Source: Paragordius varius (Eukaryota; Animalia; Nematomorpha). Taken from it: 64,000 nt of DNA. Of the stretch, positions 1 through 34,023 are shown piece after piece. Every line of letters begins with the position of its first letter. The stretch's first letter is position 1. Both the position numbers and the translations under genes were made by a program. The DNA lies in assembly GCA_964247055.1 (NCBI GenBank), contig OZ176057.1, positions 1,426,001 through 1,490,000 of the forward strand, read 5' to 3'. The notes under the pieces are model-generated. The model was not told where the DNA came from. It ran no database searches and was given only the letters and a program-made list of their open reading frames with translations.

Positions 1-33
1 TGAAAAATAAGTTTTTATCATTTCTTTGTGTCA
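1..33 (-). CDS. Micro-exon gene, exon 14 (partial, runs off window): (M)TQRNDKNLFF...
   Basis: Acceptor ttttctcag at 34-42 on the minus strand; phase-1 frame open to base 1. Confidence 0.55.
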
Positions 34-3000
34 CTGAGAAAATATATAACTTTTAAATCAATTTTGAGGTCACAAAAATTCATAAATTAATTTTAATATT
101 TAAATAAAATCACCTTTAATAATACACCAAAACACATCTCATAATCAATTTTAATAAACTTTAATTAATTATTAAAATGTCTCTAATAAATAATAATCAT
201 TTTTATGCATATTATGTTTAAACTTGTTGTAAGCTCGTCTGTGGTAGTTGATTGCGTGATAACTAATATATAAAAATTTTTAATTTGTTGAAACTCTACC
301 CATTATAATTTAAAAAATTTTGTATTCCTTAAATAAAATTTTAAAATTGTTTTTGCGAGGACAATAACCAATAATAGAATTTATGGGGCCGTTTTGCTAC
401 ATTTTTCAAAATATCCATTAATTTCAACACCTCGATTCAAATTTGGGTATCTAAAGTCTCCCCAGATCATGAAATCGATATTAATTAAAAACCACCCAAT
501 AGAATGGTCCTAAATTAAATTTATGTGTGTATCTTAAAGTACAATTTAATTTATATTTAAATAAAATTCAGTGTTTTTTTACAAAACTTATCAACCTACT
601 TCGACGCCATTCATAACAATTTTGCAAAATATCGTGTTTATTTGACTCTAACGCTAATAAGGTTTATTTTTTATTCAAATCACATCTAAGATTGATATAA
701 ACAAAAAAGGTGGTTTATAATGCATTATTTATATTTAGCTAATACACACATGTACTGACTATATTTTAAACTTGAATTGCATCCATAAAATAAGTAATAT
801 CAACTCAAAATAATAATAATGGCAAAAATATTTGAAAAAATTGATGACTTTCTTAATTACGATGGATGATGTTTTATTCTACAAAATGGATAGGGAAACC
901 TATTTCTTAGGAATTTGTGATACTTTTCCGAAAAAATAACTCGAATATTTAGGAATTATTATCGTAACTTCTATACATAAGAAAAAAGGTTTCCCTTAAG
1001 TTTTAGAAAAGTCTATTATTTTATGAAATCGATCAAAAAAGATGGAATCAGGAAATATATTATTTAAAAAATATGTGTTTGGTGGCGGAACCCAATTATT
1101 TTAATTTTAAACCTTATTAATTTGGTAAAAGAGTTATTTTCAATACTCTTTCAATATACTTAAAATTTAATAAAATTTGATTAAGGCGTGTATGGAATAA
1201 AAAAAGTTGTCTAAAATTAAATGATCAAAACTATCGTTAAAGTAAAGTTTGGGAAAATATTGTCAAATTTTAACCATTTGTTGATTTTTACGCTACTGTA
1301 TTATGAGAATTATTAATTTTTCATTAACTTGTAGTTGATTCCTCGGAAGTTATCAATTGCTTGGTAGCTATATAAAAAATTATAAAGATATCAAAAATTA
1401 TTGAATAAAAGTATTAATTTAATTTTGTTATTCTAATAATATTTAAGTTCGAAATAATAGGTGTTTTTTGTTTTACATACAAAGAGCGCCAAATTAGGGT
1501 CAAAATAGTCCCTATTTTCCTTATTTTAGTAAATATTCAAAAAAAATCAGGTGATACATTGCATCTAAGGGTAATAAACTAAAAACTTTTTTTAAGCGTT
1601 CGTCCATTATTTTCATTAAAATACTTATCGTTTAAATATTTTGTAATTAAGCTCGTGTTTTTAGAGCTTAGACATTTATTATAAGTAAAGCGTCTAATTT
1701 TTGAATGAAAATTATCAAAAAGATCGTATAGCATTATGGTTATTTGGGGATTCAACATATATAAATTTTTCTCAACATGACCTCTTAACGTTTGATAGTA
1801 AAACATGTGTGCTTAACCCGTTTGGCATCTGATATGGATTAATATAATTATTATATATAAACGTACGTTTTAAATAATATAGCACTACGACTTACTTTTC
1901 TAAATAGAAAAAAAAGGTTCATGACAGACCTAGATTTCGTATTGTTATCCGTTAAAAATAATTTCTCCTATTTCAAGAACACATATTTTTAACCAAATGT
2001 CAAGAGGTTAGGGCGCAAAAACTAAATGTTTAACATATTTGGTTCTGACACTTTACTTTATATAAATGTGGAATCTTATAACAAGACAAGCTTAAAAATT
2101 ATATATTCTTGTATTATCCATTGGCAAAAGCTGTTTTCAAAAATAAAAATTATATGACGAAAATTGATAAAACCGGCTGTTTGCTCAAAATTAATTTTTT
2201 AGTATATTTTTATATGGAGCGTGATACTCAAATTTCTTCTTACTCGAAAAGCTGATAATTTTTCCGTTCAAAAAACACAAAATTAAAAACCACATTTATT
2301 TTTTTTATAACATTACTAGCGTAAATCTCGTGCTGCTACGCAGCCCGAGGAAGTCCTTCGGACTTCTGGAGGGGGTGGGGGGGTTATTTGAAAAAAGGGA
2401 CAATAAAATGATCCACATATGTGGATTATTTCGAAACATTATTCAATAGCTATGATCTCATAGGAATTATAAAACGGTGCATTCATACATTGATTGTTTA
2501 CTTGAGGGAAAAATTGATGTAAAAAAATATTTATACATATGATAGAAACTCCTTACTCAGCAGCTATCATCAAAGAAACGCCTGACTAAAATTTTTGCCT
2601 TTCAACAGGGAATACGTGGATTCCATATAGAATTTTTACGGTCTCATACCTAGGGCAGAAAATCGATTTAAAAAATTATTTTTGTGGACTTTGTTTTTTG
2701 ATAAAAATGGCATTTTAGGGGGGGTTAGCGGGTAAAAAAAGGGCCTAAATTAAAAAAGTGACTCGACTATGTTCGGCGCAATCGAAAATAAGTAAAGAAA
2801 AATCATATTTGAAATAGAATGGACCAACACGTTGTCCGGAAAATTGTCTCAAAGACACGATTTTTGTGGGCTTCTGTTTTCAAAAAAAACCCGTTTTTCA
2901 CACGGAGTGGGCCCGAACTGAGGGCCTATTTTAAAAAAAGGGCGAAGCTATTGTCGGGGCATTCATTAATGATTATATTTTTTCGAAGTTTGGATTTGAA

Positions 3001-6000
3001 TGGGTCTACCGTACCAGATCACAAAGCCAGAATTTTCCATTTTTATAAATATATATATTTTCAATTTTATATTTACAAAAAGGTATTTTCAAATAGCTTT
3101 AATTTAGCAGAAAATGAATCCGTTTATGTGGAACAATAGCTAAAAATTTTTGGGTAGGTGTCAATTTTTTATCACGCTATTAATAAATATTTTTATTTTT
3201 ATCAATTGGTTTTAAAGAATTTATTTTTTCAATCAAAAAATGGCTGCCCCAAGGCTATCAAATTTTTATTTTATACACAAAAAACAAAATAAATACTTTT
3301 TATGTTTATGATCATATATAATGAGAATGTCATCACCAAACCCCAAATAATATAAAAAGATAACTAATACATCCGAGAAATTTGTCTGAATTTTGTCTCT
3401 ATATGATTTTTACTAAGGACGTGAAAAAGGTTCCAAATTTCTAAATAAAACCCCAAACTTTATCAATTCATATTTAATATTATATTTCCTTGAGAAAACC
3501 CAATTAACTCTAAAATAACCAATTTATACAAATTCAAATATAATATGTTTTAACATTAACTAGCAAGTTTTTTATACAATGCGGATAATTTAAGTACCTT
3601 TTATGGTGTTTTTAATTTATATATTATATAATAACTTTTCTTTTTTAACATATTATAAAATTTAATTTATTTCTCAGTAGGAAAAGCAATAAGTTTTTTA
3701 TAATTTTTAATTCATTTTGTAACAAAAGTTCAGGGTTTATAAAGAGATTCAATAGAAATTTGAAGTTTAACATCCTCTTATTTTTATAAAAATTTCGATT
3801 TTCCATTCATTGTTAAATATGATTTCAAACTTGTGGTCGGTTCCTCGGTAGTTGTCGACTGTGTGGTACCTGATTTATAAATACAAAGGTATATATTAAA
3901 ATAATTTAAAAAATGATATTATATTGTTTTACAATGAAAGTTTTTTGCTATTTCATGCATAATGTACAAAATTTAGGTCAAAAAATAGTTTTTTAACCCT
4001 ATTTTTAGATAATGCCGACCTCAGAAAATTGGGGATATATTGCATACAAGGATGGACTTTAAATATATAATTAGATGTGTACATAATTAAAATGTGTTTG
4101 CAATAAGCTCCGACATTTATGAAGTAAAGAGTATAAATTCTGTGAATCAGTAGGATCATATTTAGAATCATCTTAACTTGCATACAAAAAATATATAAAT
4201 TTTAACTAAAAATATGTCTGGAAACGCTTATTTTCGCAGACTAACTTCTAATTAATTGGCAACATGTGATTAACCCGTTAGGCTGAAAATCGTGAAACAT
4301 ATTAAAACAATAAATTGGTTAAAAAACTTCGACACTAAAAAAATATTTCGTCTTATTTCAATTATAATATATTAAAATAGATATATGACAATACAAATTT
4401 AAATAATTGTTGTTGTTATGTATTGTTGTGGTCATTTTTAGGTTATGTTGGTATTATGTCTATTTATGCGATTTGATAACAATTTAGCCATAAATTAAGA
4501 TTGATCTACAAAATTTTAAATATCATAATTGGTTAAAGAGAAGCTAACAATACTTTTCATAATATAATGTAAAAACTTTGGTTTGATAATAAAAAATTTA
4601 AATATTAACAGCTGATTTAAAACAGTTGTTGAAAAAAACGTGATCCCTAAACCTTTTTCAAAGCGATAATTTTGACCCTAAAATCGCCACACTCTATGTA
4701 AAAACAAGAATAAATATTATTAATTATTGATAAAACCTGTTAGGGGTAAAATAGGTTGTTATAGCTATTTTTGTAAACAATTACTTTTATGTTGCCAAAA
4801 TTAATTTGTAAAAAAAAATATTTGATTTAGATAGGAAAAAGTATGATATTAAAATGAAAAATATCTAAAAAAATTTTTTTTCATATTTGCTTATATATAT
4901 TTTTATATTCATTAGAAGGCTTTTTATAAAGCCATATATATGTATTGGTTTGTCAGTTGGCAAAAACATTTTAATATTCAATATGTATATCATTATTAAT
5001 AAACCGTTCAAAAAAAGATTTTACAAAATTTTGTAAGTACTTTTTAATTATATTAAATATCATTTTTGTACTTTTGATGCTTTTTTTAATATGTCAAAGC
5101 TTTACCATAACATTTACAGTTCAAAATCACCCTTGAACAAATTCACCCTTGAACAATTCATTGAACAAATATAAATCACCTTGAAATAAATTAAGTGTTT
5201 TCAAAAATTACTAATTTTTTCATATTTTTAAAAAATGAAATATTTCGTTTAAAATTTACATAATGTGAAATAATAAACTATGCCATTAGGATATATTTCA
5301 TATTAATGATGAGTATTAGACCGACAGAAAACACATAATTTATTTTTAGGGTGTAAATTGTTCAAGGGTTAATTTGAATTGCTCGAGGGGGATTTGAATT
5401 GTTTAAGGGTGAATTTGAATTGTAAATGGTATAAATAAGTATGTTTTATATTTTGTGCATTATATTACAAATTTGCAGTCAGTATAAAATTTTCTAATAC
5501 AGGTAATTTTTGAAAATCAGTTACTATTGCAATGCATCTCAAACTTTAAAATTAAAAGTGATGATAATCATTAGGAAAAAATATAAGAGGAAAGCCAAAT
5601 TTTTGACACAAAAATATAAAGGTAAAGGATTATATCGAGATTTTCTATCGGACAAAAGTTAAAAGACACTACAAATTATTATATAGAATTTTCAATTTTG
5701 TAGGATTCAGGAAATTAATTATTTTTTATGCCTTGATAATCTTAAAATATTATTAAAAAAATTTCAATTAGAGTTTATGATTGTATATGAAATTATATTT
5801 AATTTAAAGGATATTAAATAAACTAATTTATCAACTAATATAACATAAAATTTTTTCAAAAATTAAAAAAAAGTATATAATTAAATAATCTAAAATTGTA
5901 ACTTGTTGTTGGTTGCTCGCTAGTTGTCATATTCGTCATTGCTAAGAAATAAAAAATATTTTTAAATGCAAGTTTTTTAATTTAATTTAAATTCTTTCAT

Positions 6001-9000
6001 TCTGAATTGAATGATATTATAAATATCAGGTATGAGGTTAATAACATTTTATTCTAAGTATAAAATACTTACAGAGATTGTTTTGAATCAAAAAATAAGC
6101 AAAAACTTAGAAGTTTTTTTGTTACAATTAAAATAATTTTCTCTCAAATAATTTTGATATTATATAGCCTAAAAATAACTTTCATCACCAAACTCGCAAT
6201 ATAAAGATACATTAAGTTAATGACACGTATCCTAGAGATAATATATTTCTAATCCATGTTTTTTAAGGAATGAGATCTATACATACAATTGCATGCATCT
6301 TTATCAGAGGCTTAGCTTGCATTTCTGGCGCCCGAGAATCCGAGATGGCACGCCCATGCACCTTGCATTTTTAAAAAAATTATCAATAAACCGGGGTCAT
6401 AGTACTCCTAAATAGATGATTTTTTTGAATTATTTAAAATAATAACTTTTAAATACATATTTTTTTTGCAATAAAATTAAAATATTTTAAAATCCGGGGC
6501 CCCTTCAACTATGGCGCCCCGTGCATAAGCCCCCCCTTTTCCTCCCCCTAGCTACGCCTATTTTGCAATCCAAAATACAATGAATGGGTTTATAATATGT
6601 AAGTTTTTTATAAATATTAAATCTAATTATAACATATGGGTCTTTACTTTTTATGTTTTATTTTCATTATGGTATTAATTTTTATTAAAATTTTTATTGG
6701 CTATGTATGAGATTTTTTAATTTTTTGATTAAATATTAAAGAATTTTAGAGAGTACCTCCGTTTGATAAAGTCAAGAAATTATATTTAGATTCAATTTTT
6801 GATTCAATTATAGCTTCTGAACCTATTGGGGTAGTTTTCACCATAGGGCCATTTGAAATTTAAATAAAAAAATATATTTAGCATTGGGACTTTAAAAATA
6901 TGCTTTTTATAACCTTTTGGGCGTATAACAAAATTTTTAAACATGTAAAATTGTAGAAATCTCACCTCAAACTTTTTCGTAGTGCCATTTTATTTTTTTG
7001 CAATTGTAAATACACGCGAAACTTTATATTATGGTAAAAAATATAATTAATTAATTTTGGGAAGATGAAATTCAACTAACCAAAATTTTTGGATATTTTT
7101 TGATTTTAATTTCAGCTGTTCGCCATAATGTTGGAGTGTCTGGATTATGGGACTGAGAAGTAAGTTACACTTTAAAAATATTATCATTTTGTAAATCTAA
7201 TACCGGAGAAAAGGCGCTGATAATTAAATATTAACCAAAGAAGCGTTAAAAACAGTAGTTTGTTTATTACTTTATGTTCTAGGGTTCAGAAGTATGTCCC
7301 AAAATGTCATCGTGAATTAAAAATGATAATTTTAAGTGTTAAAACTTTAAAATAGCAGAAAAATCCATGAGTTTTATTTGCTTGTTATAAAATATAAAAC
7401 AAACAATATTATAAATGTGGCTGTTTAAAAGATGAATTAGGCGAAATAGAAAGTGGTTTATTTAAAACATACACACTCTACCATCCAACCATATATAATT
7501 AAAATCCATCTGTCTTTTTCAATCTAATTTCTTCATTAAATATATTTATATTATTGTTTATATTAATTCATAAGCCTAAAAATTGGGAATCTTATGTTAA
7601 CTGTTTTTTACGACGACGACCTCCGCTTTTCACTTAAAAAATTCTTAAAGCTTAATTGGAACCGGGTATTTCATTGCAAACAGAACGCCATTATATATTG
7701 CTAATAATTTAAAATAAAGCTTAAATCATTTAGTTGATGAGACATAATATGTGATTTATTTTGCTTTCATGTTAAAACATTTTTTTGTGTAAATAAAATC
7801 TAAAGTTTCTCTTAATTATTTCTAATTTCACTTATTATTAAAATAATTCCAAGTTTCTTTTAATGTGCATAATTGCTCTCTGGGGATATAAATAAATTTA
7901 AAATTTACCATGATTCACTCAATTATTATTAAAGTTTTAAAACTAACTTGTAAAAGGTATTGTAGTTGGTGGACTGGTCGCTAAAAATTATGTAAAATAT
8001 TTTCATAAAAAATTATTTATCATAGTGGTCAATTAATAAAAAGTAGGCATAATAAAGCAAATATATGAAATAATTATCTGGTCAAGTTTAAGGATACTTA
8101 TGAGTAATACTGAAACTTATTTTTAAGATGGAGACAATGATGGCCTAACTTCAGAATTTGAGATACATTTGAAGTACACACGCAATATAAAAAAATAAAT
8201 GCAAAAACAGAAAACAGATTTTTTCCATATCGTCTTTTGATTCAACCAATAATTTTAAAATTTTCTTACCATAATTAACCAAAGTAACATGAAAAAACCA
8301 AAACAGTTGAAGTACCTCCTAATGATTTATTTGAATTAACCGTATATGTGATTTTATTAAATTTATTGAAATCTTGTAAACAGACGATTAAATTGTTTTT
8401 TAATTTTACTCTCTTTTCTATAAAACTGTTTTGGAGGTGTAAAAATTTGTATTACTAACTGCACAATGAAGATTTGACATTAGTTTTAAGGTACATAAAA
8501 CCTAGCTAATCTTAAAAATAAGACTATCCAAAAAATTGAAAAGTGTTATGATCAGCATCACTAGCCTATATAAATACTGTTATTTAAAAGAATTAGAGTG
8601 GGCTCTCCAGAGGGCAGGTCCACTGTAGTGAGAAAAAATAATGAATCTCTCTTTTTTCCCTAAAATTTAAGGAATAAGGAATTAATTGTATTAGAACTTG
8701 TCAAAGCTATAAAACTCTCTCCTGTCCAGGGCTGACAGTTTAAATTTAAATAATTTCAAAGGTCCTAGGCCTTAACTATTTGGTCCTTACGCTTCACTGT
8801 AATAAATGGCAATAAATACGATTATAAAAAGTATATTTAGTGAGGATGATTAGAAATAAATTGAGAAATATATAATTGTTTAAAAATTAAAAAAGCTTCA
8901 AAAACTTAATTAAATATTTCTTAAATTAAATACTTGTATTAAATTCAGTGGATATGGTGTTGGCAGTTGCTTTATTAAAATAAATACCGCAAAATTATTT

Positions 9001-12000
9001 ATTAAATATAATTAATTTTTAGCTGTGTTTTTGTATTGAATGAAAATTTTTTTATACTTGAAAGTGGTTGACTAGTTGTAGATTGATTGGAAGCTAGATT
9101 AACATATTTAAAAATAAATATTTTAATACAAAAATGAAAAATAATTGTTGTTATAGAAAGATTTTTCTTACAACTACAATCAAATAATCAAAGTTAAATG
9201 TGTTTCCAATTTACACTTTTTAAACACGTCCAACACAGATGGTTTGGCGGGCCGCATATGGAAATATGGGCCTTGACAAATATTTTTTTATATTAATTTT
9301 GGACATAAGAATGTAAAACGACAACTATTTATTTAAAATATTTACGAGTTCATTGCCGAAATTGGGAAAGAATCAAAAAATTTTGTCTAAATTTTGTATT
9401 TATATTTTCTGCCGGGCCGCAGAAATTTTTTGAAGGGTTACGAGTTGAGGACCCCTGATCTAAACCTTAGTTTTGTAAAAATTATAGTTTATAGTTCCTG
9501 GAGATGAGAGGTGAAAATTGTGATTACATATTATAATTATTTAATGTATGAAAATGAAACTTATAAAAAATATGGTTTTTTTCTGTAAAAAATTAAGTGA
9601 CTGTTAAAATGAACTTTTTTCGTCTTTTAATTAAATTAAAATTTTTAATTTTGTATTATAAAAAATTTATATAACATAATAAATAGCAAAAGTTGCCTCA
9701 GGTCTCCTTAACCTGTAGAATTTATTTTAGGAGGAGGTTGTGATTCGAATGATGTCGGAAAATATTTTATAATTATTTTCCATAAAAACTTATGAAAAAT
9801 AATTATATGTATATTGGATCAAAGATAATACCTTCTAAATTTTTATAAACAATCAAAGAAAAATTTTAAGATTCCATTATAATTATTATATATTTAACTA
9901 TTCAAAAAATTAAAATACGGTAACAATAATTAGATGGCGAATTTTCGGCTATACGAAAATGAATTAGTGAAATTTCATTTATACATATTGTAAACAACCT
10001 ATAAAACACTGTGAACTCTATTATGGAAACGAAATTCAGATTGCAGCAGTCTCAGATGATTCTAGTCACGTAAAGTTTAAATTTTACGGATCTTACCTAT
10101 TCAAATATTTGAATTTATAAATTATATATGATGCAAATACAGTCATGGAATATCTATTATTTATGTATTTGTATTTTTTGATATATTCCAAAATAACCCC
10201 AAAGCAAATGTATACAATAGGCATTTTAATAGTTGTTTATTTCACACTATAGTTGGGCGATTCGCAGTAGTATATAGAAAAAAAGGAAAAAATTATTTAT
10301 ATAAAATTTTGTTGTTTTTCCACACACTACTGTGTTGCAAATTGCCCTACTATATTGTGAAATAAGCAATCATTAAAATGCACACTCTATAAAGCTCTAT
10401 TTTTGTAATACAAGCATTTTCAATTTCATATACTACCTCTATGATTTAACTTTAAACAAACAACATACAAAACATAAAGGCAAAAAAAATTTAGAAAGAC
10501 GCAATATTACTTTTAAAACCTTGAGATTACCGTAAAAACCAACTTCCTAATGGTTGCTTATTTCAAACTATAATTGGGCAATTCGCACCATATTAGTCGA
10601 TGGTAACCACATAACGTAAGAAAGGAGTAAATTCTTTATTCAACATTTTATTGTTTTTCCATACACTACTGTGTTGTAAATAATTCAACTATAGTGTTGA
10701 ATAAGCAACCATAAAAATGCATACTCTAATTGAGTTACAACCAATATCTTATATTAACCATTTCGTCTCAAAACGATGAGAGTTTTATAAAAAATCACGA
10801 TTTAATACCCGGTTTTTTTATAAACAAAAAATTTTTTTTTATTTTTACGCTTTTGTATGTATATTAATTTAAGTTTCTGCAATGGCTCAAAATTTTTGTA
10901 TCAAAAAATATTGCATTTTTTTTTCTATTTTTAGCTATTATTAAATTAAATGTCAACTTATTTGGAGAATAAGGACGATTGATTTTGTTAAATTTTGTTT
11001 GAAACTATTTTTTTGTTCTTATAATTTTACGTTTTGTTCACACTATTTATACAAATATAAATTTTTCATATAAAATTCGTCTTTCAAAATATTATATTTT
11101 TCGTGGCTCTTTAAACAGATTTTTCTAAAAAAATGTAATTTTAAATTTCGTAAAAAAATAAAATTTATACAATAAAATTGTTAACAAATTGCAAAGCAGC
11201 TATAATTACAGAATATCTGAACCAGCTATAACAACAAAAATCATTTTTTGTCAATAATTTTATAAAATTAAATTAGTAATTTGTGAATCGTTTTTCAAAT
11301 TAAATATTTTTTTATATTTTTTTATGATAAATAATATTTTTTAAAAAAATATAAAAAAAAATATAAAAATTTTAAAATACCCAATGAATATATCAATATA
11401 TATGAAGGAATAGTCATCTCTACAACTATTTAAAATTATTTTTTTATTTTATCATTAAATAGCTCTTTTATTTCTAATTTAACTTTTTTTTGTAAAAAAT
11501 ATATACAAATTTAAATAATACTGGTGGTCGTATTCAATGGTATAGCTAAAATTAATATAAAATTAAAATTAAAATAAACTATTTATATTTTAATCTTTTT
11601 AAAATATTAATTTAGTAATTTACCTGTAGTTATGACAATAACCAGAGTTTCTAAAATTGAAATATAATTTTGATTGTTATAATTATTAAATTGTGGATTA
11701 GGATATACCTGGAATGGTTTATACAAGTCTTGTGGCGCTAAAAAACAATATTTTTAAAAAATTATAGAAAAAATTATTATTTATAATTAAAAAGTATTAA
11801 AAAATAATATATTGTGATATTGCAAAAATTGTTTAAATGCCCCAAAAAATTTGAAAAACAAGTGTAATTTAGAGTAAAAATTGAAATTATACAGACAATG
11901 GAAAAATGATAAATATTTTTTGAAAAGATACCCATACTACTTTTTAAACCTTAACTTTTATTTAATTACATTTGAAAAATATGTAATTCATTCTACCAAT

Positions 12001-14135
12001 TAACATCTCTATTTTACGTCTAAAACAAAGATGTAATTGAAAAAAAACAAGAAAAAAGTATAGCAGTGTTTAAAAAAATATATTTTTACTATAATTTAAA
12101 ATGTTTTAAAAATAACATATTGGTAAATCATGGAAAAAATAAACGGAAAATAATACACAACAATCTTAGTAATAAAAACGTATAAATTTAAAATGATCAA
12201 ATTATTGATATTTTTGATACATGCTGCCAATATAGTATTAACATTACAGATGTTTAAAATACGTAACAAAGTTGCAAAGGGGTGTCCAACACAAATATCC
12301 GCGGCTGTTTTGATAATTTCAGTTTTTTTTTAAATTTATTTTGAGCCAAATTTCAGATGACATTTCTAAATAATTTTTGATTGAATTCTAATTTTTTATT
12401 TTTTTTTAAGTTAGAGCTCTTTTGCTATCAAAAAAAGCGCGTTAAACATCCCTGAAGTAGCATGTAAGAAATAAAATTTAATAAAATATTTAAAAAAAAT
12501 CAAAAGATATGTTACTCCATTTTAGGGTGGTTTTATATTCCAGATTAAAGAGTTAATATCTTAAAAAATATTTAAAATTTTAACCCGAATCAAACAATGT
12601 GCTTTCTTTCTTTTAGGTGCATTATACAAGATCTATTTATAAATGTCATATTGGAAAAAAATCCTATCGCAAATTTTTTCGAAGCCATTTTTTCCTATAA
12701 ATTTTGTTAAATCGCTAATGCAACAAACAAATATATGTATATTATGAATTGACAATGTAATTAATTAACTTTAAAAATACTTGGGCTACATTTTATCATC
12801 AAAAACTTGATATATTTTGATTTTAATATCAGCTCTTCGTTTCGATCGTGTGAGTTGTCCCAATTTTAGATTTACAAGTCACTGTATAAAATATAGGTCT
12901 TTTTATATTTAACTAAAACAACTTTCAAAACTGTAGTTTTACGAAATTGAGCTCTGTCATATAAAACTACCCCAATATATCATCGCGGACAAAAAAGTGA
13001 AGCCGTCATGAGTGTTAAAAAATTGCTTTATATATAAAACGAATGGGATAAGAGTGATAATCGCCAAATCACAAATAAAAAAATTCTCAAAAAATACGTA
13101 TTGATTTTATTTTATTTTGAATTGATATAGTTAGCCGAGTATAAAAACTTAAATCATATCGATTGTTATTTGTAAAACCCATTTTATTATAAAATAGTGT
13201 TAATCAACAAAATAAACACCATTTAAAACAACAGTTTTTTAATCGGGATTTATTTAATGTTTTTTTAAGCAATAGACAGGTTTAGATCATCTAATAATGG
13301 CATATATGCCTAATTGTCAATTAGGAGAACTACTACAATCGTTATGAAGCTAAAAATGTGCAATTATCTTATCCAGTAAAAAAAGGCTGTTTAAAAAAAT
13401 TTGTATAACTCTTGTAATACATCTTTTTACACACGAAAAAAATTCAAGCTTATATGTATGTGCAATAGACTATATAATATTTACTCGTTATTTGATAGGT
13501 ATCGGATAATATCAGTTCACCTACAATATGAAAGTTAAAAATATTTGTAATTAATTAAAATTAATTTTTAAAATTGATTTAACAGTAAAAAAAATTATAC
13601 TATTGATAAGTTAAAAGACTGATAATCTAAATACGATTAAAGCGTGTTAATGTTTTCAAATCTCTTCTTAATTTTGTAACTTAAATCGATAATCAAAATT
13701 GAAAAATATGGTTTTTTCATTATAAGTTGTCTTTTTTGTGTTTACATTTTAATATTTTTGGAATTTAACTACCAATTTATATATATTAAATATCTATTTT
13801 TACTTGAAGTATCGTTGAAAAAGAAATTATCATCATCTATCACAACATTATCCAAGGCTAAAAATTAAATTTATTAAATAATCAGAGATATTTAAACCAT
13901 AACAACCGTTTTAGAAGAAAAACAATTACAAAAACTATGAATCTTTCTTTAATCGCAATTTGAAGGATCCTTAAAATTACATTTTTTGCTTTTTAAAAAG
14001 ATTTGGTTTATTTTAATCTTATAAAAAACCAAAAATTATAAAAATATTAATTATTAAAATACTTGTAGTTTCAATAGCAATCGTAGCGATGATGTATTGA
14101 CACAGTAGAATTATTATAATATTTTTGATGGTCAT
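1..14135 (-). CDS. Micro-exon gene encoding a signal-peptide-bearing Thr/Ser-rich mucin-like protein; 3' end lies beyond the window start
   Basis: 14 collinear minus-strand exons with canonical AG/GT ends: 14135-14063, 13857-13804, 13520-13485, 11737-11709, 11650-11624, 11545-11522, 9093-9058, 8969-8934, 7980-7948, 5941-5903, 3869-3831, 1367-1329, 262-224, 33-<1. Skipping the 29-nt exon, they splice in frame to MTIKNIIIILLCQYIIATIAIETT-TLDNVVIDDDNFFFNDTS-SELILSDTYQIT-KTLVIVITT-AIPLNTTT-TSNQSTTSQPLS-TTANTISTEFNT-TTSPPTTIPFT-TMTNMTTSEQPTT-STTQSTTTEEPTT-TTKQLITSEESTT-IITQSTTTDELTT-MTQRNDKNLFF... Confidence 0.85.
224..262 (-). CDS. Micro-exon 13, 39 nt, ITQSTTTDELTT
   Basis: tattag|...ACA A|gtttaa; phase 1-1; paralogous to exons 10-12. 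Confidence 0.85.
1329..1367 (-). CDS. Micro-exon 12, 39 nt, TKQLITSEESTT
   Basis: tatag|...ACA A|gttaat; phase 1-1. Confidence 0.85.
2313..3140. mobile_element. Probable non-autonomous Helitron/Helentron-like (DINE/HINE-type) insertion in an intron
   Basis: TACTAG followed by a GC-rich hairpin (CTCGTGCTGC-TAC-GCAGCCCGAG), a second hairpin (GAAGTCC-TTC-GGACTTC) and a G-tract, heading a GC-richer ~800-bp island; right boundary approximate. Confidence 0.35.
3831..3869 (-). CDS. Micro-exon 11, 39 nt, TTQSTTTEEPTT
   Basis: aatcag|...ACA A|gtttga; phase 1-1. Confidence 0.85.
5104..5432. mobile_element. MITE with imperfect TIRs and subterminal CACCCTTGAACAATTCA repeats (second copy 29941-30182)
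   Basis: Left end catttacagttcaaaatcacccttgaac is the inverse of right end gtttaagggtgaatttgaattgtaaatg; same organisation at 29941-30182. Confidence 0.6.
5903..5941 (-). CDS. Micro-exon 10, 39 nt, MTNMTTSEQPTT
   Basis: ttcttag|...ACA A|gttaca; phase 1-1. Confidence 0.85.
6305..6562. mobile_element. Non-autonomous DNA transposon relic (GC-rich ends)
   Basis: Imperfect TIR cagaggcttagct / agctacgccta, with GC-rich subterminal ggcgccc motifs. Confidence 0.45.
7948..7980 (-). CDS. Micro-exon 9, 33 nt, TSPPTTIPFT
   Basis: tttttag|...ACA A|gttagt; phase 1-1. Confidence 0.85.
8934..8969 (-). CDS. Micro-exon 8, 36 nt, TANTISTEFNT
   Basis: aataaag|...ACA A|gtattt; phase 1-1; 88-nt intron to exon 7. 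Confidence 0.8.
9058..9093 (-). CDS. Micro-exon 7, 36 nt, SNQSTTSQPLS
   Basis: aatctag|...TCA A|gtataa; phase 1-1. Confidence 0.85.
9226..9457. mobile_element. hAT-type MITE, left end eroded
   Basis: Right TIR gttgaggacccctg, gcgggccgca subterminal motifs; flanks ttttaaac / atctaaac resemble an 8-bp TSD. Confidence 0.55.
10221..10728. repeat. Two adjacent copies of a ~170-bp palindromic MITE-like element (10221-10391, 10549-10728)
   Basis: Each copy has ~45-bp inverted ends (gcattttaatagttgtttatttcacactatagttgggc / gccctactatattgtgaaataagcaatcattaaaatgc) and shares the core ttgtttttcca(c/t)acactactgtgttg. Confidence 0.65.
11522..11545 (-). CDS. Micro-exon 6, 24 nt, IPLNTTT
   Basis: attttag|...ACC A|gtatta; phase 1-1. 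Confidence 0.8.
11624..11650 (-). CDS. Micro-exon 5, 27 nt, TLVIVITT
   Basis: attttag|...ACA G|gtaaat; phase 1-1; 78-nt intron to exon 6. Confidence 0.8.
11709..11737 (-). CDS. Micro-exon 4, 29 nt (one base short of symmetric), PQDLYK...
   Basis: ttttttag|...CCAG|gtatat; 58-nt GT-AG intron to exon 5; as assembled it shifts the frame. Confidence 0.55.
13485..13520 (-). CDS. Micro-exon 3, 36 nt, ELILSDTYQIT
   Basis: attgtag|...ACG A|gtaaat; phase 1-1. Confidence 0.8.
13804..13857 (-). CDS. Exon 2, 54 nt, LDNVVIDDDNFFFNDTS
   Basis: tttttag|...TCA A|gtaaaa; phase 1-1. Confidence 0.8.
14063..14135 (-). CDS. Exon 1: signal peptide MTIKNIIIILLCQYIIATIA-IETT
   Basis: ATG at 14135-14133, basic residue then hydrophobic core and A-x-A cleavage motif; ends ACA A|gtattt (phase 1). 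Confidence 0.85.
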
Positions 14136-14760
14136 TTTTAATTATATTTTTTTTATGAAAAATTTGAAAAAAATAATCAAAAATTAGATTTAATATAATT
14201 CAGATTAAAATTAATAAAATAATATGTTAACTTAAAATATTATATATATATCCCTGCAAAAATATGAATTTATTCCTGTGACCTAACAATAAACCTATAT
14301 AATTACATACAGGTGTGAGTAATAATTTTATGGTTTCCAATTTTTATTATAACTGATTTTTTTAATTATTGCAAATATTTATTCGAAATCATTTATAACA
14401 AACAATTTGATGTTACAATATATGGTACCAATTTTAATCTTTTAGGGTTATATTTTTTAGTATTTAGGGTTCAAAAACTGGGAGTTAAAATCTTTTCAGA
14501 AGTTTTTCACGGGAACTGTTAACATTTTATTTTCTTATTGAAAATGTGCTCCAACCTTAAATTATTATCACACGCAATCTAAGCAAGGTAAATATTTAAA
14601 AAAATATTTTTGGAGGGCGTTTTAATTAAATATATTTTTGGAAATGTATTATAAAAATTTGTATTTTGGGGATATTTAGTATATAAATCAATTTTGTTAT
14701 AAGATTAAACACTGTGTACCTGAGAAATGTTGTAAACTTTAGTAATTATAAACATAATTG

Positions 14761-17545
14761 ATGGTTGGTTGGTTTTTCCTAAGTCGTAAACGACTTTTTT
14801 ATATAGTTTTCACTATTTCTTTCCATTTTCTTCTATCTTTTACCGCTATTTTGAGATCGTTCAATGTCATTTTAGTCTCTTATTTTATCGTATCCAACCA
14901 CCTCATCGGGGGTCGGCCTCGTTTCCGTTGTCCTTCTACCTTCCAAAACATTGTATCTTTCTCTAGAGAATTCGATCGCATGACATGACCAAAATATGTT
15001 AACTTTCTGTTTAGAATTATCTCCAGGATGTTTGTTTTAGGTTCTATTTTTGTAGTTAGATTTCCATTCTTAATTTTATCCTTTCAGGTGTATCCTAGCA
15101 TCGCCAGCAGCTCCTATCGAAAGCCATGAGCCTTTCTTTGTCGCTTTTTCTGGAAGTCCAGCTCTCACAACCATATGTGGTGACCGGGAGAACAAAACAG
15201 TAGGGTAATCTTTTTTTATTTTCAATTCCTACGTTTTTGTTTTTCCAAATCTTTATTAGTTTGGTTATGACTTTTTTACCCAATCCTATTCTCTTTCTGA
15301 TGTCAGGAGTTGAAGACCCATCCTCGGACATTACAGCACCCAAAAACATTGTTTAACTATTTCTATTTCCATTCTATCTATAATAATTGTAGGCTTTTCT
15401 CCAGTACATAATATTTTGGTTTTATTAGGGTTAGGCATAAGACCATAACTCAGACTTTCCTTTCGAATCTCTTCCATCAATTCTTATAAATTATTTACAC
15501 TTTCAGCTATGAGAGTATATCGTCTGTAAACCTTAAATTGATTGTTGACCCATTATTTTTACTCCAATATTTTTACCATCTAACTTTCTCATTATCATTT
15601 CTGTGCACATATTGAACAGATTAGGGGATAAGCAACACCCTTGTCTGACTCATTTCAAGATAGGTATTTCTTCTGTGTCCCCCGCTGATGTTCCTATAAT
15701 CGCTCTTTGTTTTACATAAAGAGAGCTGATCAATCTTATTAAGTGGAACGATACCCCTACTAACTTTAATGTTTCCCCCAAGGAGTCATATTTAATCGAA
15801 TCGAAGGCTTGTCTGCAATCAATAAAACACATGTACAATTCTTTCTGAAACTCTTTAGATGTTTCCATTATTCTTCTCATGTTTGATTTATGGTCTCTTG
15901 TGCTTTTTATTCATAAATCCGGCTTGATTTTCTGGTACTGACTGTATAATACTGTGCATCCTGTTTTGTTTTATTTTTAGCAAGCCTTACTAGCATGGCT
16001 AATAAGAGGTATGTTTCGACATCCCCTTTTTTGTATATTAGGAGATAAACAGATGATATCCAGTCGTTTAGCCACTCACATGCTTCCCACACCTTTTAAC
16101 ATACACTTGTGTAATGTTTCTACAGGAATAGCTTTTATTAACTCTATTGGGATATTGTCTAATCCCATCGCTTTGTTGTTAGGAATTTGTTTTAAGGCTA
16201 ATTCAACCTCCTCTCTTAGTATATCTGGATCACGTTCTTCCTCTTTTAATTGCAACACTTTTGCTTGAGGGGCATGATAGAGTTTTTGGGTGTATTCCTT
16301 CCATCTTTCTCGTGCTTCTGTTGTTTTCCTAATATGACATTCTCTTTTTTAATCTTTTGGGATGATATATAAGGTTTGTGAGTCATTTGCTGAGTTTTTG
16401 GAACATTAGTTGCATTAATCCTTTTTTGTTATTTTCCACTTCCAGACATTGTTTATTAAGAAATTCTTCATAATCCTTCCTTGTTTGTCGTTGAAATTCT
16501 TCATATAATTTAACCATTTTATTATCCCCTCTAGATTTAGCTTTTCTCCGCTTTTCTGAGATCCATTTATTATCTTTCCTATTTACCCTTTGCACCTTTT
16601 CTTTTGCCACTTCCTTAATAACATTTTTTATCGTTCCCCATAATTGTTCTGAGCTACAGTCATTGTCCAATCTATCTAATCTATCTTTTGTTTCTGTTCT
16701 AAAACTATTTAGAATGTTCCGAGTGTCATATCTGTATTTCTGTTTGACCTTATTTTTAATTGTTTTAATGTTAAAGCTAATGATCGCTAGAGCAATCGCT
16801 GCTTTTGCTTGTTTTTGTATAGAGTATAGAACTTTTCCCTTTTTGTGGACATATTATGTAGATTTGGTGCTTATATTTACCACATGGAGAGGTTTATAAC
16901 CTCCTATTGTGTTGTGGAAACCATGTGTTGGTTATCATCATCTCCTTTTCCTGGCAAAAATTGATCACTGCCTCCCCACCTCCCCAGTCTCGTTTCGTTC
17001 TCTCAATCCATATGGCCCGACTATTTGATCTACTCTACCTCTACCAACTTTGCTGTTCCAATCACCTATGATAATCATATCTCCTTTCTTCGTTTCATCC
17101 AAAACTATTTGCATCTTTGCATAACAATCCTCTATGTCTTCTTTGGGAGCATTTGACGTAGGAGGTTAGACTACTATGTATGTAAATTTAACTGACTGAG
17201 CATTCAGCCTAATACTCATGATTCTGGGTGTATATGGTGTATAACTAATCAGACTTTTATTTGGTTTGTTTTTTATTAATACTACAACGCCTTCTGATTT
17301 CTGGTCATCTCTCCCCGATATTAACAATGTATATTATCGTTTTGTGCTTTTGCGCTGCCTTTTTGCTTAGTTTCCGTTATACCCAGTATATTTATGTTCA
17401 ATCTTTTCATTTCTCTTTCAATTATATTCTGTTTGGTTTCTGTTAATGAACGTACGTTCCAGCACCCAACTTTGAAATGGTGCGTCTATTGCATAGTGTA
17501 ACTATTGTTTGGCAGTGATAAAACGAGGGTGGTTTGCCATTGCGT
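14761..17545 (-). mobile_element. Near full-length but decayed RTE-clade LINE (AP endonuclease + reverse transcriptase)
   Basis: Minus-strand motifs GCWNVRSL (endonuclease start), GDWNSKVG, NKAMGLDNIPIELIK, FIDCRQAFDS, RQGCCLSPNLFN, YGCESWT, GQRKRGRPPMRWLD; many stops and frameshifts; no TSD found. Confidence 0.9.
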
Positions 17546-23046: not shown

Positions 23047-26000
23047 ATGAGCCAAGCGTTGGACATTTCAAAACTGATTTTGGAGCCTTTTAAGGAACCG
23101 ATGAATTTTACGCAATATATACGTCACATCAGGAGAGTCTTAAATTCCAAAAATATCGAATCCAATGACACCACAATGAAACGCACTTTTCTCGCTTTCG
23201 GCGGTATTCAAGTAATAATGAAAATCGAAACGTTAGCATTCCCAAAACTCATAGATGACATGGAATGGGAGGAAATTGCAACCTTGGCCACTCAGATATA
23301 TTCACCAATCAGCAGCCTATGGTTAAATCGAGTTGAATTCTACCGATTAAAAAAAATGCCAGATGAATCAGTCATGGATTTCCTGGAACGTCTGAAAGCA
23401 AAGTGTGAAGCCGGGAAATTTGAAGGGGATATTCAGTCAAAATTACGCGATTTATTCCTGGTAGGTCTTGAAAATCCCAGAGTAGAACGCGAAATTCAAT
23501 CCAAATATCCAGATGGCAAAAAGGACGGGGGTCCGGTAACCCTTCAAGCGATTGTAGACATCGCTTATTCCTATGAATTAGAAGATAAAAAACAACATCA
23601 GAGATAATAATGATATGAACAATGATAATACCAGTGAACTTCCTTCAAGTATCCAACCAGTTGTTAATGATAATAATACAATCAATCAAATAACCCGAAA
23701 GCTATGTAGTAATTGTGGGTATCGACATGGTTCCGCCACCTGTCCGGCAAAAGGAAAACGGTGTTTCAATTGCGACAAATGGAATCATTTCAGCACAGTA
23801 TGCAAGGCAACGTTCCGACGGCCGTCAATCCGCACCATGACTAGCCCGAACAACACCCCCCGGATTCAGGTATTAATAAATAATATACCAACAATATTTA
23901 TCTACGATACGGGCGCCGAGGTATCCGTTATTGGCAAGCGCACTTGGGTAAATATTGGTGGACCTCGTTTGCTCCCAGCTCCAAATTTGCGAACCTACAA
24001 TCATGGCCCGATAGAAGTACTCGGAAAATCGATGATTTCAGTGGTTTTGAACGAAGAGGAGAAGTGCTTGCCCTGCGTGGTGACGCAAACTAACCCGCCA
24101 GCCGTGTTCGGGATGAATTGGATGCGAACGTTTCGGTTAGAATTCCCAAAAAATGTTTTTTCAGTTTTACATACGCAAGCACCTAATAATAAAATGTTTA
24201 TTTTGACAAATTGTTTTCAGACGAGTTAGGTACTTTCAAGGGGCCCCCAATAAAATTATTTATCGACCCCGGGGCCAAACCTAAAGTTTTTCCTTGTCGT
24301 AGGGTACCTTTAACTCTAAAACCTTTAGTAGAAAATGAAATTGATAGATTAGTTAAACTCAAAATACTCCGACCTATTGATCCGACCCAAACCCCAATAA
24401 CATGGGCCTCTCCCACAGTAAATATAATTAAAGGAAATGGAGAAATTAGGATATGTGCCGATTTCCGAATTAGTATCAACCGTTATTTAGCAAAGGATTC
24501 TCATCTGATACCTACTTTTGACGAGTTGGCCACCAAAGTGGCAAATGGGATAATTTTTTCCACTTTAGACCTGAAAGATGCTTACTTACAATTTCCGATA
24601 GACCGGGCGTCACAGACGCTAGTAACCATCACAACTCACAAAGGGTTTTATGCTTACCAACGACTTCCATTCGGATTAACTTCAGCACCTATGATCTTTC
24701 AAAGATGCATGGACAATCTTTTAAAGGACATACCTGGTATTTGTGTGTACCTGGATGATGTCTTAATTTCCGGAGCTACCAGGGAGGAACATGATCAAAG
24801 ATTAAGGGAAGTATTTAGAAGGTTACAAGAGGCGGGATTACGATTGCGCCGAGACAAATTGCAAATTGGTATCTCACGAGTCAAATACATGGGGTACGTG
24901 ATTTCTGACAAAGGTATTGAGCCGTCCAATGAAAAATTAGAGGCCATTAAAAATTGTCCGACACCTACAAACAAAACTGAGCTACGTTCGTTCTTAGGCT
25001 TAATAAATTTTCATGAGCGGTTTATACCAAACTGTCACCCACACCTAGCAACCTTACACAAGTTAAGTGGAAAGAATACACCTTGGCGGTGGACCCCGGC
25101 AGATGATAGTGAATTCGCGAAAGCAAAAAGCTTGCTAACCAGGCCCCCCGCTTTAATGCCATTTAATGACCGTTTTCCCTTGTTGATCGAAACAGATGCT
25201 TCCAACAAGGGGTTTGGGGCAATACTGTTTCATAAGACCCCACAGGGGAAACGCCCAATTTTTTACGCGTCACAAACTTGTTCAATAGCAGAAAAGGGTT
25301 ATTCCACGATCGAAAAAGAGGCCAAGGCCATAGTGTTTGCCCTAAAAAATTTAAATACTTTATATATGGAGAACCTTTCGAGATATATACAGATCATAAA
25401 CCGCTGGTGTCACTATTTGGGCGGAAGAGAGACATCAACAACATTAATAATAGCAAACTGCTCAGGTGGATATCGAAGACCATCGAGTACGAGTATGAAA
25501 TATTTTACAAGAAAGGGGAAGAAAACTTAGCCGACGCGTTGTCGAGACTTCCCATAGAGCATAGCCAACCAGATGATGAAGATGACGCGGCCACCAAGCA
25601 GGTACGATTTTTGGCTCTAAAAACGCTGGATGTAAATAAGAAAGTGGTCGAAGAGGCAACGATCACTGACCAACGGTTATCAAAAGTTAAAAATTCTCTC
25701 AGGACAAACAGTTGGATCGACGAAGATCTGAAACCTTTTTTAAAACATAAAAACGACTTGGAGTGTTGTTATAATCTGTTATACCTGAATGATCGCTTAG
25801 TGATACCACAAGCGATGCAGGAAACGATATTGAAACTTCTGCATACGGGACACAGCGGGCTAAAAACAATGAAAGCCCAAGCCCGGTGTTCGGTATTTTG
25901 GCCCGAATTAGACACCGATCTAGCGAATTATGTGGAAAGGTGCGAGGCTTGCCAAACCTATCGACCTAACGCACCTGAAAATCTTCCCTATCGATGGAAT

Positions 26001-26970
26001 TTTAACACTTTGACATGGGAAAGGTTACATATAGATGTTGCTGGACCGGTGGACGGATATTATTGGTTAGTGACTATCGATAGCGCCTCACGGTGGGTAG
26101 AGATAGATCTTCTTAAATCAATAACGAGTCAAAGCGTTTTAAATTGTATGGAAAAACACATCGCACGATTTGGTTTTCCCCGCCAAATTGTGACCGATAA
26201 CGCCACGTATTTTACTTCAAGAGAATTTACGACTCTCCTAAATCATATGAATATAAAGCACATCTGTGCAGCACCCTATCACCCCAAAACAAACGGTCTA
26301 GTAGAGAGAGTAATAAAGACATTAAAAACGAAATACGCCGCTACTAAGACCCAACAAATGCATACATATGAAGCTATCAACACGGTCCTTTATTCGTATC
26401 GAACTAGCATGCATTCTTCGCTAAAAGAAACGCCTTCCGCCATATTCCTAAAACGGCGTGTACACAATCCTATCTCTTGGGTAAAAACAACCCCTGTCGA
26501 ATTTATAGAGCACGAAAATGAACCGAGACGCGAATTCCAACAAGACGATCCTGTCTATATTAAAAATGAAATGGCCGTAGGCTGGCGGCCAGGTCATATT
26601 CTGGAGAGGGTTACTCTCGTATGAAGTGCAAGATGAGGAAGGGATTCGAAAACGTAAACATGCAGATCAGTTACGACGTAGGTCAGGAGGGAATTCATAC
26701 GAAACTAATCCCTTAATAGAGCATAAATATCCCAGCGTCGAAAGTGTCCCGGGTCATGTCGAGGGAGCCCACTCCGAACAAACCTTCCATCCCACCTCGG
26801 AATCTCAAATAGTCCATGCCCCAACTCCTGCTACCTCATGGCAAGACGTAGCCCCAGAATCGCTGACGCCTGTAGAGGCCACACCCGACGTGGTAAAGGA
26901 GGTTTCTGACCTACCCGAGCGTAGATATCCGCTAAGAAGACGGCAGCCTCCCGATCGTTTAAACTTATAG
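23047..26970 (+). CDS. gag-pol: gag-pol polyprotein split by four single-base frameshifts
   Basis: Gag; Cys/His knuckles CSNCGYRH..CPAKGKRCFNCDKWNHFSTVC; protease YDTGAE; RT LDLKDAY and YLDD; RNase H ETDAS; integrase H-H-C-C, HIDVAG, VTDNA, NGLVER; C-terminal RHADQLR-like and RRYPLR motifs. No substitution-type stops seen. Confidence 0.92.
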
Positions 26971-34012: not shown

Positions 34013-34014
34013 TT

Positions 34015-34023
34015 TGGCGACGA
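34015..34023 (+). promoter_or_regulatory. Primer-binding site, best match tRNA-Ser(GCU) 3' end
   Basis: TGGCGACGA, 2 nt after the LTR; metazoan tRNA-Ser(GCU) ends ...CCTCGTCGCCA. Confidence 0.65.

Follow-up and report, generated by a model that had tools for sequence, protein, structure and literature searches.

A Probable Micro-Exon Gene for a Mucin-Like Secreted or Surface Protein in the Horsehair Worm Paragordius varius

Introduction

The micro-exon genes (MEGs) of Schistosoma encode an N-terminal signal peptide and are split into 10-20 very short exons, whose lengths are mostly divisible by 3 and which are separated by introns of 0.1-5 kb; they are missed by automatic annotation and their products are secreted (10.1101/2023.06.21.545858). 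In the SmPoMuc genes of Schistosoma mansoni, each mucin repeat unit is carried on its own 27-bp micro-exon between introns and the transcripts vary. The SmPoMuc micro-exon lies within a genomic repeat of about 1 kb, where the intronic part is >93-94% identical between copies, a pattern of concerted evolution (PMC2576457). The bicycle/megacycle genes of aphids also encode a signal peptide and have about 17 exons on average, with nearly all internal exons beginning at codon position 2 (PMC9168663).

Here we describe a chain of micro-exons at one end of a 64,000-nucleotide stretch of Paragordius varius DNA, which is referred to as the window. The chain has the build of the MEG, bicycle and SmPoMuc genes without belonging to any of those families. 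We take it for the 5' half of a genuine protein-coding gene that lies on the minus strand, lacks annotation and would encode a secreted or surface mucin-like glycoprotein, and we assign this reading a probability of about 0.7. Our literature search found no paper on micro-exon genes or mucins in Nematomorpha.

The exon chain

The predicted exons and the features that accompany them are given below in the direction of transcription, with a slash marking a splice site.

14239..14250, minus strand: TATA-like run TATATATATAAT, about 105-115 nt upstream of the ATG, read directly from the sequence
14063..14135, minus strand: exon 1, 73 nt, encoding MTIKNIIIILLCQYIIATIAIETT and ending in ACT ACA A/GT (phase 1)
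13804..13857, minus strand: exon 2, 54 nt, acidic head TLDNVVIDDDNFFFNDTS, sequon NDT, bounded by ttttag/ and /gtaaaa
13485..13520, minus strand: exon 3, 36 nt, SELILSDTYQIT
11624..11650, minus strand: exon 4, 27 nt, KTLVIVITT
11522..11545, minus strand: exon 5, 24 nt, AIPLNTTT, sequon NTT, separated from exon 4 by a 78-nt intron
9058..9093, minus strand: exon 6, 36 nt, TSNQSTTSQPLS, sequon NQS, weakly similar to the 39-nt exon profile
8934..8969, minus strand: exon 7, 36 nt, TTANTISTEFNT, separated from exon 6 by an 88-nt intron, junction codon completing a sequon NTT
7948..7980, minus strand: exon 8, 33 nt, TTSPPTTIPFT, donor CAA/GTTAGT
5903..5941, minus strand: exon 9, 39 nt, TMTNMTTSEQPTT, sequon NMT, the first of four paralogous 39-nt exons
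3831..3869, minus strand: exon 10, 39 nt, STTQSTTTEEPTT
1329..1367, minus strand: exon 11, 39 nt, TTKQLITSEESTT
224..262, minus strand: exon 12, 39 nt, IITQSTTTDELTT
1..33, minus strand: possible further exon, ctcag/TGACACAAAG..., preceded by AG, with a phase-1 frame that stays open as far as the window edge

A first-pass annotation of this DNA had proposed fourteen exons, of which only twelve could be placed; the candidate thirteenth at positions 33-1 is not Thr-rich and is unsupported. All eleven internal exons that it had described (54, 36, 27, 24, 36, 36 and 33 nt, followed by four of 39 nt) were located on the minus strand within positions 1-14135. Its account of their ends also holds, since every one of the eleven is preceded by AG, is followed by GT, has a length that is a multiple of 3 and lies in phase 1, thereby starting at codon position 2. 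The introns between the exons range from 78 to 2463 nt. When the twelve exons are joined, they give an open frame of 158 codons, in agreement with the stop-free product that had been claimed. The frame is still open past exon 12 and therefore the gene would extend beyond the left edge of the window. A 29-nt AG..GT segment at 11735-11707 was dismissed as an exon because the joined frame would then run into a stop within exon 4.

The start codon of exon 1 occupies positions 14135-14133 in the context AAAATG. The TATA-like run upstream of it is a possible core promoter, although it lies in DNA of 24% GC and constitutes weak evidence. Adenine is found at donor position -1 in 11 of the 12 exons and thymine at +3 (GTT) in the last five. 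Exon 4 is the sole exon with a terminal G and its donor, CAG/GTAAAT, is the strongest in the series. The donor sites are weak when compared with the general metazoan consensus.

Predicted product

The peptide encoded by exon 1 consists of MTIKN, a 14-residue uncharged hydrophobic core and ATIA. Its first 19 residues have a mean Kyte-Doolittle value of 1.9. The n-region has a single Lys and the -3/-1 rule is satisfied by A-T-I-A. By these rules of thumb, exon 1 is predicted to encode an N-terminal signal peptide, which would be cleavable. The spliced product is net acidic and its only Cys in 158 residues falls within the signal peptide. After exon 1 it contains 35% Thr, 11% Ser and 5% Pro, as expected from the Thr/Ser/Pro-rich chain noted earlier, and all five of the N-x-S/T sequons that had been counted are present (NDT, NTT, NQS, NTT and NMT). 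Each of exons 5-12 contributes one module of 8-13 residues with 45-80% S/T/P.

The product therefore resembles, in composition and layout, what would be expected of a mucin-like secreted or surface protein, with secretion and glycosylation predicted. We propose that exons 2-4 would form a short head that is acidic and hydrophobic, and that exons 5-12, together with more exons left of the window, would form an acidic Thr/Ser/Pro-rich stalk capable of carrying both N- and O-linked glycans, possibly with a role at the animal's surface. Each stalk exon would supply one short ..Q-S-T-T-T-E-E-P-T-T-like module, with the splice junction placed within a Thr codon (A/CN).

A search with the 158-residue product against a collection of 5.8 billion sequences, in which proteins of about 87-276 aa were covered, revealed no relative at E <= 0.01, which leaves the locus with neither an annotated model nor support from other species. 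In an exact search of a metagenome collection, both the exon 1-exon 2 junction and genomic exon 12 were without a match. Three open reading frames of the window were also looked up in the contig collection to extend the sequence leftwards, again with no match.

Departure from chance and coding-type conservation

We counted as Thr-rich phase-1 micro-exons those AG..GT segments that are in phase 1, measure 24-54 nt, reach at least 45% S/T/P and close with a Thr or Ser codon plus A. Eight were observed in the region as opposed to 0.05 +/- 0.21 (maximum 1) in 300 dinucleotide-preserving shuffles of the same region. None was found on the plus strand of the region and two occur in the other ~100 kb of window strand sequence. 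A chance origin of the exon chain is excluded. The position of exon 1, 205 nt upstream of exon 2, is only moderately significant when taken alone because crude signal-peptide-like ATG exons with a phase-1 donor number 13 in 128 kb, or about one per 10 kb of strand. Among these 13, exon 1 has the second-highest hydrophobic-core score and it terminates in the series' own ACT-ACA-A/GT motif.

The exons form islands of higher GC content (0.37; range 0.29-0.54) in flanks of 0.07-0.25, with each exon being richer in GC than both of its flanks. As an example, exon 2 has a GC content of 0.30 and its flanks 0.21 and 0.16. In pairwise comparisons, 22-29 of 39 bases (56-74%) agree between the four 39-nt exons, as against 11-21 of 39 in their 39-nt flanks, which is at the random level; the similarity is lost at the splice sites and the introns cannot be aligned. 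Pairwise differences among these exons are distributed over codon positions 1, 2 and 3 as 15, 20 and 39. This test draws on just four related 36-nt sequences, whose six pairs are not independent. The pooled pN/pS is 0.48 with a pS of 0.56, and thus the copies are old yet intact. A search with the 39-nt exon profile on both strands of the window recovered the four intact copies only and no decayed ones. By these patterns, the exons behave like coding DNA, and each of the four 39-nt exons has retained a sequence of its own under constraint.

Introns and repeats

We propose that the stalk grew through ancient tandem duplication of a single phase 1-1 micro-exon. Initially the introns were probably short, like the present ones of 78-283 nt, and later repeat insertions may have expanded them to 1-2.5 kb. 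An example of repeats inflating the long introns is the following feature, which is high-copy:

10213..10728, no strand assigned: MITE-like foldback cluster inside intron 5, with inverted repeats I1-I3 and direct repeat D1

No tandem or inverted repeats were found around the exons apart from this cluster, and the introns contain no tandem repeat units. In an Rfam scan of the whole window no family was matched, hence no hammerhead ribozyme or other RNA.

Comparison with known systems

The first-pass annotation had described the locus as MEG-like, and this is borne out for the architecture, where a signal-peptide-like exon 1 is followed by short symmetric exons of the same phase (within the 3-81 bp used as a criterion for MEGs) and by long introns. 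The gene is not a member of the Schistosoma MEG family, as its product has no sequence relatives at E <= 0.01; MEGs are moreover regarded as confined to Schistosomatidae. Their exons are also mostly smaller, many being 15 bp, whereas those found here measure 24-54 nt. The MEG products are short proteins (up to 189 aa), hydrophobic and sticky, and carry a conserved hydrophobic motif, FL..F..W-basic, after the signal; this motif is absent from the present product, which is Thr-rich, mucin-like and acidic in its post-signal part. Furthermore, alternative splicing is documented for MEGs, while the exon set described here would, by its sequence, tolerate skipping. An 'independent MEG-like system', as the annotation had put it, is a reasonable but unproven reading.

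The likeness to SmPoMuc lies in the S/T/P-rich modules, with one per micro-exon (exons 5-12). The two differ in that the exon copies here are 56-74% identical with unrelated introns; the duplications are therefore old and independently evolved, unlike those of SmPoMuc. The absence of a hammerhead ribozyme from the window is a further difference. With the aphid bicycle genes the locus shares a predicted signal peptide and many micro-exons that begin at codon position 2, the equivalent of phase-1 introns, as do all eleven internal exons here. Paired CYC motifs are the defining feature of bicycle proteins, in contrast to the single Cys of this product, and these proteins are salivary effectors of a hemipteran lineage with no sequence similarity to it.

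A signal peptide followed by a Thr/Ser/Pro-rich, heavily O-glycosylated stalk is characteristic of TcMUC of Trypanosoma cruzi, MUC of Toxocara and the classical mucins. The predicted secreted product shares with PTS-domain glycoproteins in general an extended domain high in Ser, Thr and Pro. A classical PTS domain is the product of a single large exon or, in trypanosomes, of a gene without introns, whereas here each module of about 12 residues is placed on its own exon.

Transcription, exon skipping and alternative explanations

Spliced RNA had been suggested as a check of the junctions and the locus did not gain support from it, as no contig from the species' RNA runs touches the locus. In five RNA runs of the species, none of 11 sampled words from exon 1 and its surroundings was found, and the contigs of two of them (X6 and X8) gave only spurious matches of 18-21 nt to positions 8200-14199. 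These assemblies are small (19-30 million letters of contigs), rare transcripts are dropped from them and the life stage is unspecified.

We would expect the exons to be included in order for the most part and to be skipped now and then, given the weak donors. All 66 ordered exon-to-exon joins are free of stops because the exons are symmetric, of the same phase and end in A or G. Such joins show tolerance of skipping and are not proof of its use.

A stronger version, which we regard as unlikely though worth weighing, is a true MEG-like diversification, where regulated or stochastic skipping would produce mucin variants that differ in length or glycosylation and might, for example, blunt host recognition. 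The stop-free joins agree with it, and weak donors, tiny exons and kilobase introns are conditions that favour skipping. In schistosomes, MEGs built in the same way yield isoforms in which the central exons are alternatively spliced (10.1101/2023.06.21.545858), and SmPoMuc mucin transcripts differ in exon presence (PMC2576457). Against this, no transcript of any kind was seen in the RNA runs searched, and the individual constraint on the four 39-nt exons would fit equally well with fixed positions in one product. Tolerance of skipping is, moreover, automatic in any run of symmetric same-phase exons. Collagen and elastin contain such runs and are tolerant in the same way.

It is quite improbable that the locus is a silent or dying gene, a former micro-exon gene now without expression that would be either a young pseudogene or a redundant paralogue. 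The lack of RNA contigs in the available runs and the invasion of the introns by high-copy repeats would agree with such a state, but frame, AG and GT are intact in 12 of 12 exons and no decayed exon copy exists in the window. In addition, change at synonymous-type sites has come close to saturation with the peptide motif preserved, which argues for long-lasting selection instead of a recent release. That there is no gene at all, the exons being AG..GT stretches that arose by chance in AT-rich DNA or else fragments of dispersed repeats, is extremely improbable: the minus strand of the window does offer 745 phase-1-open AG..GT candidates and generic filters flag about eight other segments inside the introns, but the Thr-rich pattern far exceeds that of the shuffles and is limited to one strand and one 14-kb interval, the 39-nt profile has no copies elsewhere in the window, and the unrelated flanks of the similar exons imply that no transposable element gave rise to them.

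Significance

Should the predicted splicing be real, this would be one more case where gene finders have overlooked a whole class of secreted-protein genes in an AT-rich animal genome. A more speculative proposal, which we hold to be doubtful, is that a lineage of horsehair worms came to possess a large repertoire of all-phase-1 micro-exon genes for secreted proteins, independent of those in flukes and aphids, and that combinatorial splicing of the present mucin stalk would let each worm confront the immune system of its insect host with a mix of stalk lengths and glycan patterns. If the gene is real and further such loci exist, this would be the third unrelated parasite lineage to make secreted proteins from chains of same-phase micro-exons. 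Three independent origins would allow a comparison to ask whether such chains are a by-product of exon duplication or are selected for frame-safe variation. The practical consequence is that the annotation of this genome requires micro-exon-aware methods.

Additional observations

The window is without any conserved multi-exon gene. Two sequencing runs that carry other organism labels (X5 and X11) were considered as diverged relatives and rejected, since their single-copy pieces match the window to within 0-2 differences per 150-350 nt; the runs therefore represent the same species at low depth. Their listed differences from the window within 8200-14199 lie in high-copy repeats. In run X5, the MITE-like cluster was observed to have a word depth of 1570 compared with about 3-7 for single-copy pieces.

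The exon chain and its predicted product

The minus strand of positions 1-15000 was read directly and the exons were placed by script. Twelve exons were located, with the coding start at the right.

Exons of the predicted gene in transcript order (exons 2-12 are all flanked by AG upstream and GT downstream)
14135-14063, minus strand: exon 1, 73 nt, ATG at 14135 in the context AAAATG, 3' end ACT ACA A/GT
13857-13804, minus strand: exon 2, 54 nt
13520-13485, minus strand: exon 3, 36 nt
11650-11624, minus strand: exon 4, 27 nt
11545-11522, minus strand: exon 5, 24 nt
9093-9058, minus strand: exon 6, 36 nt
8969-8934, minus strand: exon 7, 36 nt
7980-7948, minus strand: exon 8, 33 nt
5941-5903, minus strand: exon 9, 39 nt
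3869-3831, minus strand: exon 10, 39 nt
1367-1329, minus strand: exon 11, 39 nt
262-224, minus strand: exon 12, 39 nt

The eleven internal exon sizes reported in the first-pass annotation are identical to those located here, and its description of them as multiples of three with phase 1 and AG/GT ends holds for all eleven, every intron being in phase 1. The introns measure 205, 283, 1834, 78, 2428, 88, 953, 2006, 2033, 2463 and 1066 nt from exon 1 to exon 12. The stop-free splice product was also reproduced, as the joined exons give 158 codons without a stop and the frame is open up to the left window edge. Fourteen exons had been claimed and the further two were not placed; a candidate at 33-1 (minus strand) is AG-preceded and open, but it is not Thr-rich and is unsupported. 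A 29-nt AG..GT segment between exons 3 and 4 (11735-11707, minus strand) has a good acceptor and GTATAT as its donor. It was rejected as an exon because its inclusion changes the frame so that exon 4 runs into a stop, and it may be a decoy or poison pseudo-exon.

The N-terminus, MTIKN-IIIILLCQYIIATI-A/IETT, resembles a signal peptide by rules of thumb: it contains a single Lys, its hydrophobic core spans 14 uncharged residues, and positions -3 and -1 are occupied by small residues. The head, encoded by exons 2-4, is short, acidic and hydrophobic, and exons 5-12 encode a Thr-rich stalk. Residues after exon 1 are 35% Thr, 11% Ser, 5% Pro, 11% Asp+Glu and 1.5% Lys+Arg, in agreement with the Thr/Ser/Pro-rich chain described earlier, and the five N-x-S/T sequons described with it were all counted in the 158-aa joined product (NDT39, NTT68, NQS74, NTT94 and NMT110), NTT94 being completed by a junction codon.

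We consider it probable (about 0.7) that the chain belongs to a genuine gene whose product is a mucin-like glycoprotein, either secreted or at the surface, and that a single phase 1-1 micro-exon, duplicated in tandem long ago, gave rise to the stalk. Each exon would then supply a short module open to glycosylation, and every junction would fall inside a Thr codon. Deliberate diversification of the product by exon skipping seems a rather unlikely addition. The donors are weak against the general metazoan consensus (A at -1 in 11 of 12, T at +3 in the last five), so that some skipping would be unsurprising and the frame would survive it. However, a series of symmetric exons that share a phase keeps its frame under skipping in any case. 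Stops arise at none of the 66 joins between exons taken in order, because the exons end in A (11/12) or G (1/12) while every stop codon begins with T.

Sequence behaviour of the exons

The predicted mucin-like gene was also assessed by the composition and similarity of its exons. All twelve are GC islands, at 0.29-0.54 (pooled 0.37) against 0.07-0.25 in their 100-nt flanks, and the enrichment is mostly in C. The four 39-nt exons (exons 9-12) are identical at 22-29 of 39 bases in pairwise comparison, whereas the 39 nt on each side of them match at 11-21 of 39, no more than composition would give. When these exons were aligned with 100-nt flanks in MAFFT, coherence was confined to the stretch between the splice sites. 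Judged by this similarity the four are paralogues, and they have retained the peptide module x-T-Q-S-T-T-T-E-E-P-T-T together with both splice sites. Pairwise differences at codon positions 1, 2 and 3 number 15, 20 and 39, with a pooled pN/pS of 0.48 and pS of 0.56, a test which, drawn from four short related sequences only, is suggestive and not rigorous. The copies are old, since synonymous-type sites are near saturation. A position-weight profile (AG+39+GT) scored the four intact copies at 57-70 bits, and its other scores stayed at or below 11 bits on either strand of the window, where decayed 39-nt pseudo-exons were not found. The GC islands, exon-limited similarity, third-position bias and absence of decayed copies indicate that the exons behave as coding DNA.

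Comparison with known micro-exon genes and mucins

Schistosome micro-exon genes (MEGs) encode a signal peptide and are divided into 10-20 exons of 3-81 bp, most of them divisible by three, with introns of 0.1-5 kb, and they have been overlooked by annotation (10.1101/2023.06.21.545858). Their overall build agrees with that of the Paragordius varius gene, but the latter has no sequence relationship to them, and MEG products are short hydrophobic peptides whereas this product is predicted to be mucin-like. The gene is not a member of the MEG family. In aphid bicycle genes almost all internal exons begin at codon position 2 (PMC9168663), a rule common to both systems, although the defining CYC motifs are absent from the Paragordius varius product. 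The closest functional analogue is SmPoMuc, the polymorphic mucin of the parasite Schistosoma mansoni, with one repeat per 27-bp exon within ~1-kb genomic repeats and introns more than 93% identical (PMC2576457). In contrast, the Paragordius varius exon copies are old and diverged and their introns are unrelated. Classical mucin PTS domains are encoded in one large exon, and the layout of one module per exon is the unusual feature of this gene. From its sequence we regard it as a predicted micro-exon secreted-protein gene non-homologous to known families. A literature search gave no paper dealing with nematomorph mucins or micro-exon genes.

RNA and database searches

When sequencing runs were searched with 7900-14200, DNA-like runs labelled organism A contained 73-89% of the sampled words, and five RNA-labelled runs under the same species label shared 0.00 of them. 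Exon 1 with its surroundings (161 nt, 11 sampled words) likewise gave 0.00 in 5/5 RNA runs. Contigs of two RNA runs (X6 and X8) gave only 18-21-nt spurious matches to 8200-14199 and no joints at predicted junctions; these are small assemblies, with contigs totalling 19-30 million letters, from an unspecified life stage, and Logan contigs lose rare transcripts. The first-pass annotation had staked the gene on spliced RNA at these junctions and had read it as a possible independent MEG-like system. The build and the mucin-like composition support that reading in part, and RNA support is absent from the X6 and X8 contigs over this interval. The result is absence of evidence, yet a real negative by the annotation's own standard, and it lowers our confidence in the gene. 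A silent or dying gene, with which the RNA result would agree, is nevertheless improbable beside the intact 39-nt copies and the open frame.

Pieces of 150-350 nt from two runs under other organism labels (X5 and X11), aligned to 8200-14199, each differ from the window at 0-2 positions. These runs contain the same species at low depth and were too similar to provide the divergence that a conservation test needs. The samples, labelled as organisms B and C, appear to hold DNA of this species, possibly as host or cobiont, mislabelled sample or synonym. In a protein search covering lengths of about 87-276 aa the 158-aa product had no relatives at E <= 0.01. The metagenome collection contained neither the junction of exons 1 and 2 nor genomic exon 12, and three window ORFs were not on record in the contig collection.

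Chance occurrence of the chain

Phase-1-open AG..GT candidates number 745 on the minus strand of the whole window. At 24% GC such segments abound, so openness by itself is no proof; composition and shared exon ends distinguish the chain. Segments were counted if they were phase-1 AG..GT, 24-54 nt, at least 45% Ser/Thr/Pro and had a final A after a Thr or Ser codon. Eight were found on the minus strand of 1-14155, none on its plus strand, two in the ~100 kb of strand sequence that make up the rest of the window, and 0.05 +/- 0.21 (maximum 1) in 300 dinucleotide-preserving shuffles. Crude signal-peptide-like ATG exons with a phase-1 donor occur 13 times in 128 kb of strand (~1 per 10 kb), and the placement of exon 1 at 205 nt upstream of exon 2 is thus only moderately significant alone. 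Its hydrophobic score is the second-highest of the 13, and its 3' end (ACT-ACA-A/GT) is the motif common to the rest of the chain. For all the abundance of open segments, a chain arising by chance or from a repeat is very improbable. Sequence statistics lend the gene good support, RNA none.

Introns and neighbourhood

Repeat analysis found no exon-bearing tandem unit in the introns. Apart from a MITE-like foldback cluster in intron 5 (10213-10728), they contain no structured repeat. The cluster consists of nested inverted and direct repeats and has a word depth of 1570 against ~3-7 for single-copy pieces in a DNA run. Bins 11200-11399, 11800-11999 and 12800-12999 are high-copy too. The short introns (78-283 nt) may represent the ancestral state and the kilobase introns later repeat inflation. 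GC-rich islands with G or C runs and GGGCCC-type motifs were noticed at 2300-3000 (intron 10) and 6300-6560 (intron 8), and they look like fragments of unclassified repeats. A 106-aa ORF within one of them (2819-3139, plus strand) has no record in the contig collection. Rfam families gave 0 matches in the window.

Other features of the window
14770-15000 (about), minus strand: 3' end of a LINE-type retrotransposon ORF (GHVMRSNSLEKDTMFWKVEGQRKRGRPPMRWLDTIK-like tail), then an A-rich end, by sequence reading
23047-26624, plus strand: LTR-retrotransposon body 1, Pfam gag-protease, RT, RNase H and integrase
33987-37550, plus strand: LTR-retrotransposon body 2, same Pfam domains, split into several ORFs
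61265-62338, plus strand: single-exon ORF, ~357 aa, signal-peptide-like start MKSLILLRYIAILCFACIFG, Pfam LRR_8 match

The LINE-type 3' end bounds the upstream region of the gene at ~630 nt from the ATG, and the GC-rich blocks of the window are due to the two LTR-retrotransposon bodies. The ORF at 61265-62338 is a candidate secreted leucine-rich-repeat protein near the micro-exon gene neighbourhood.
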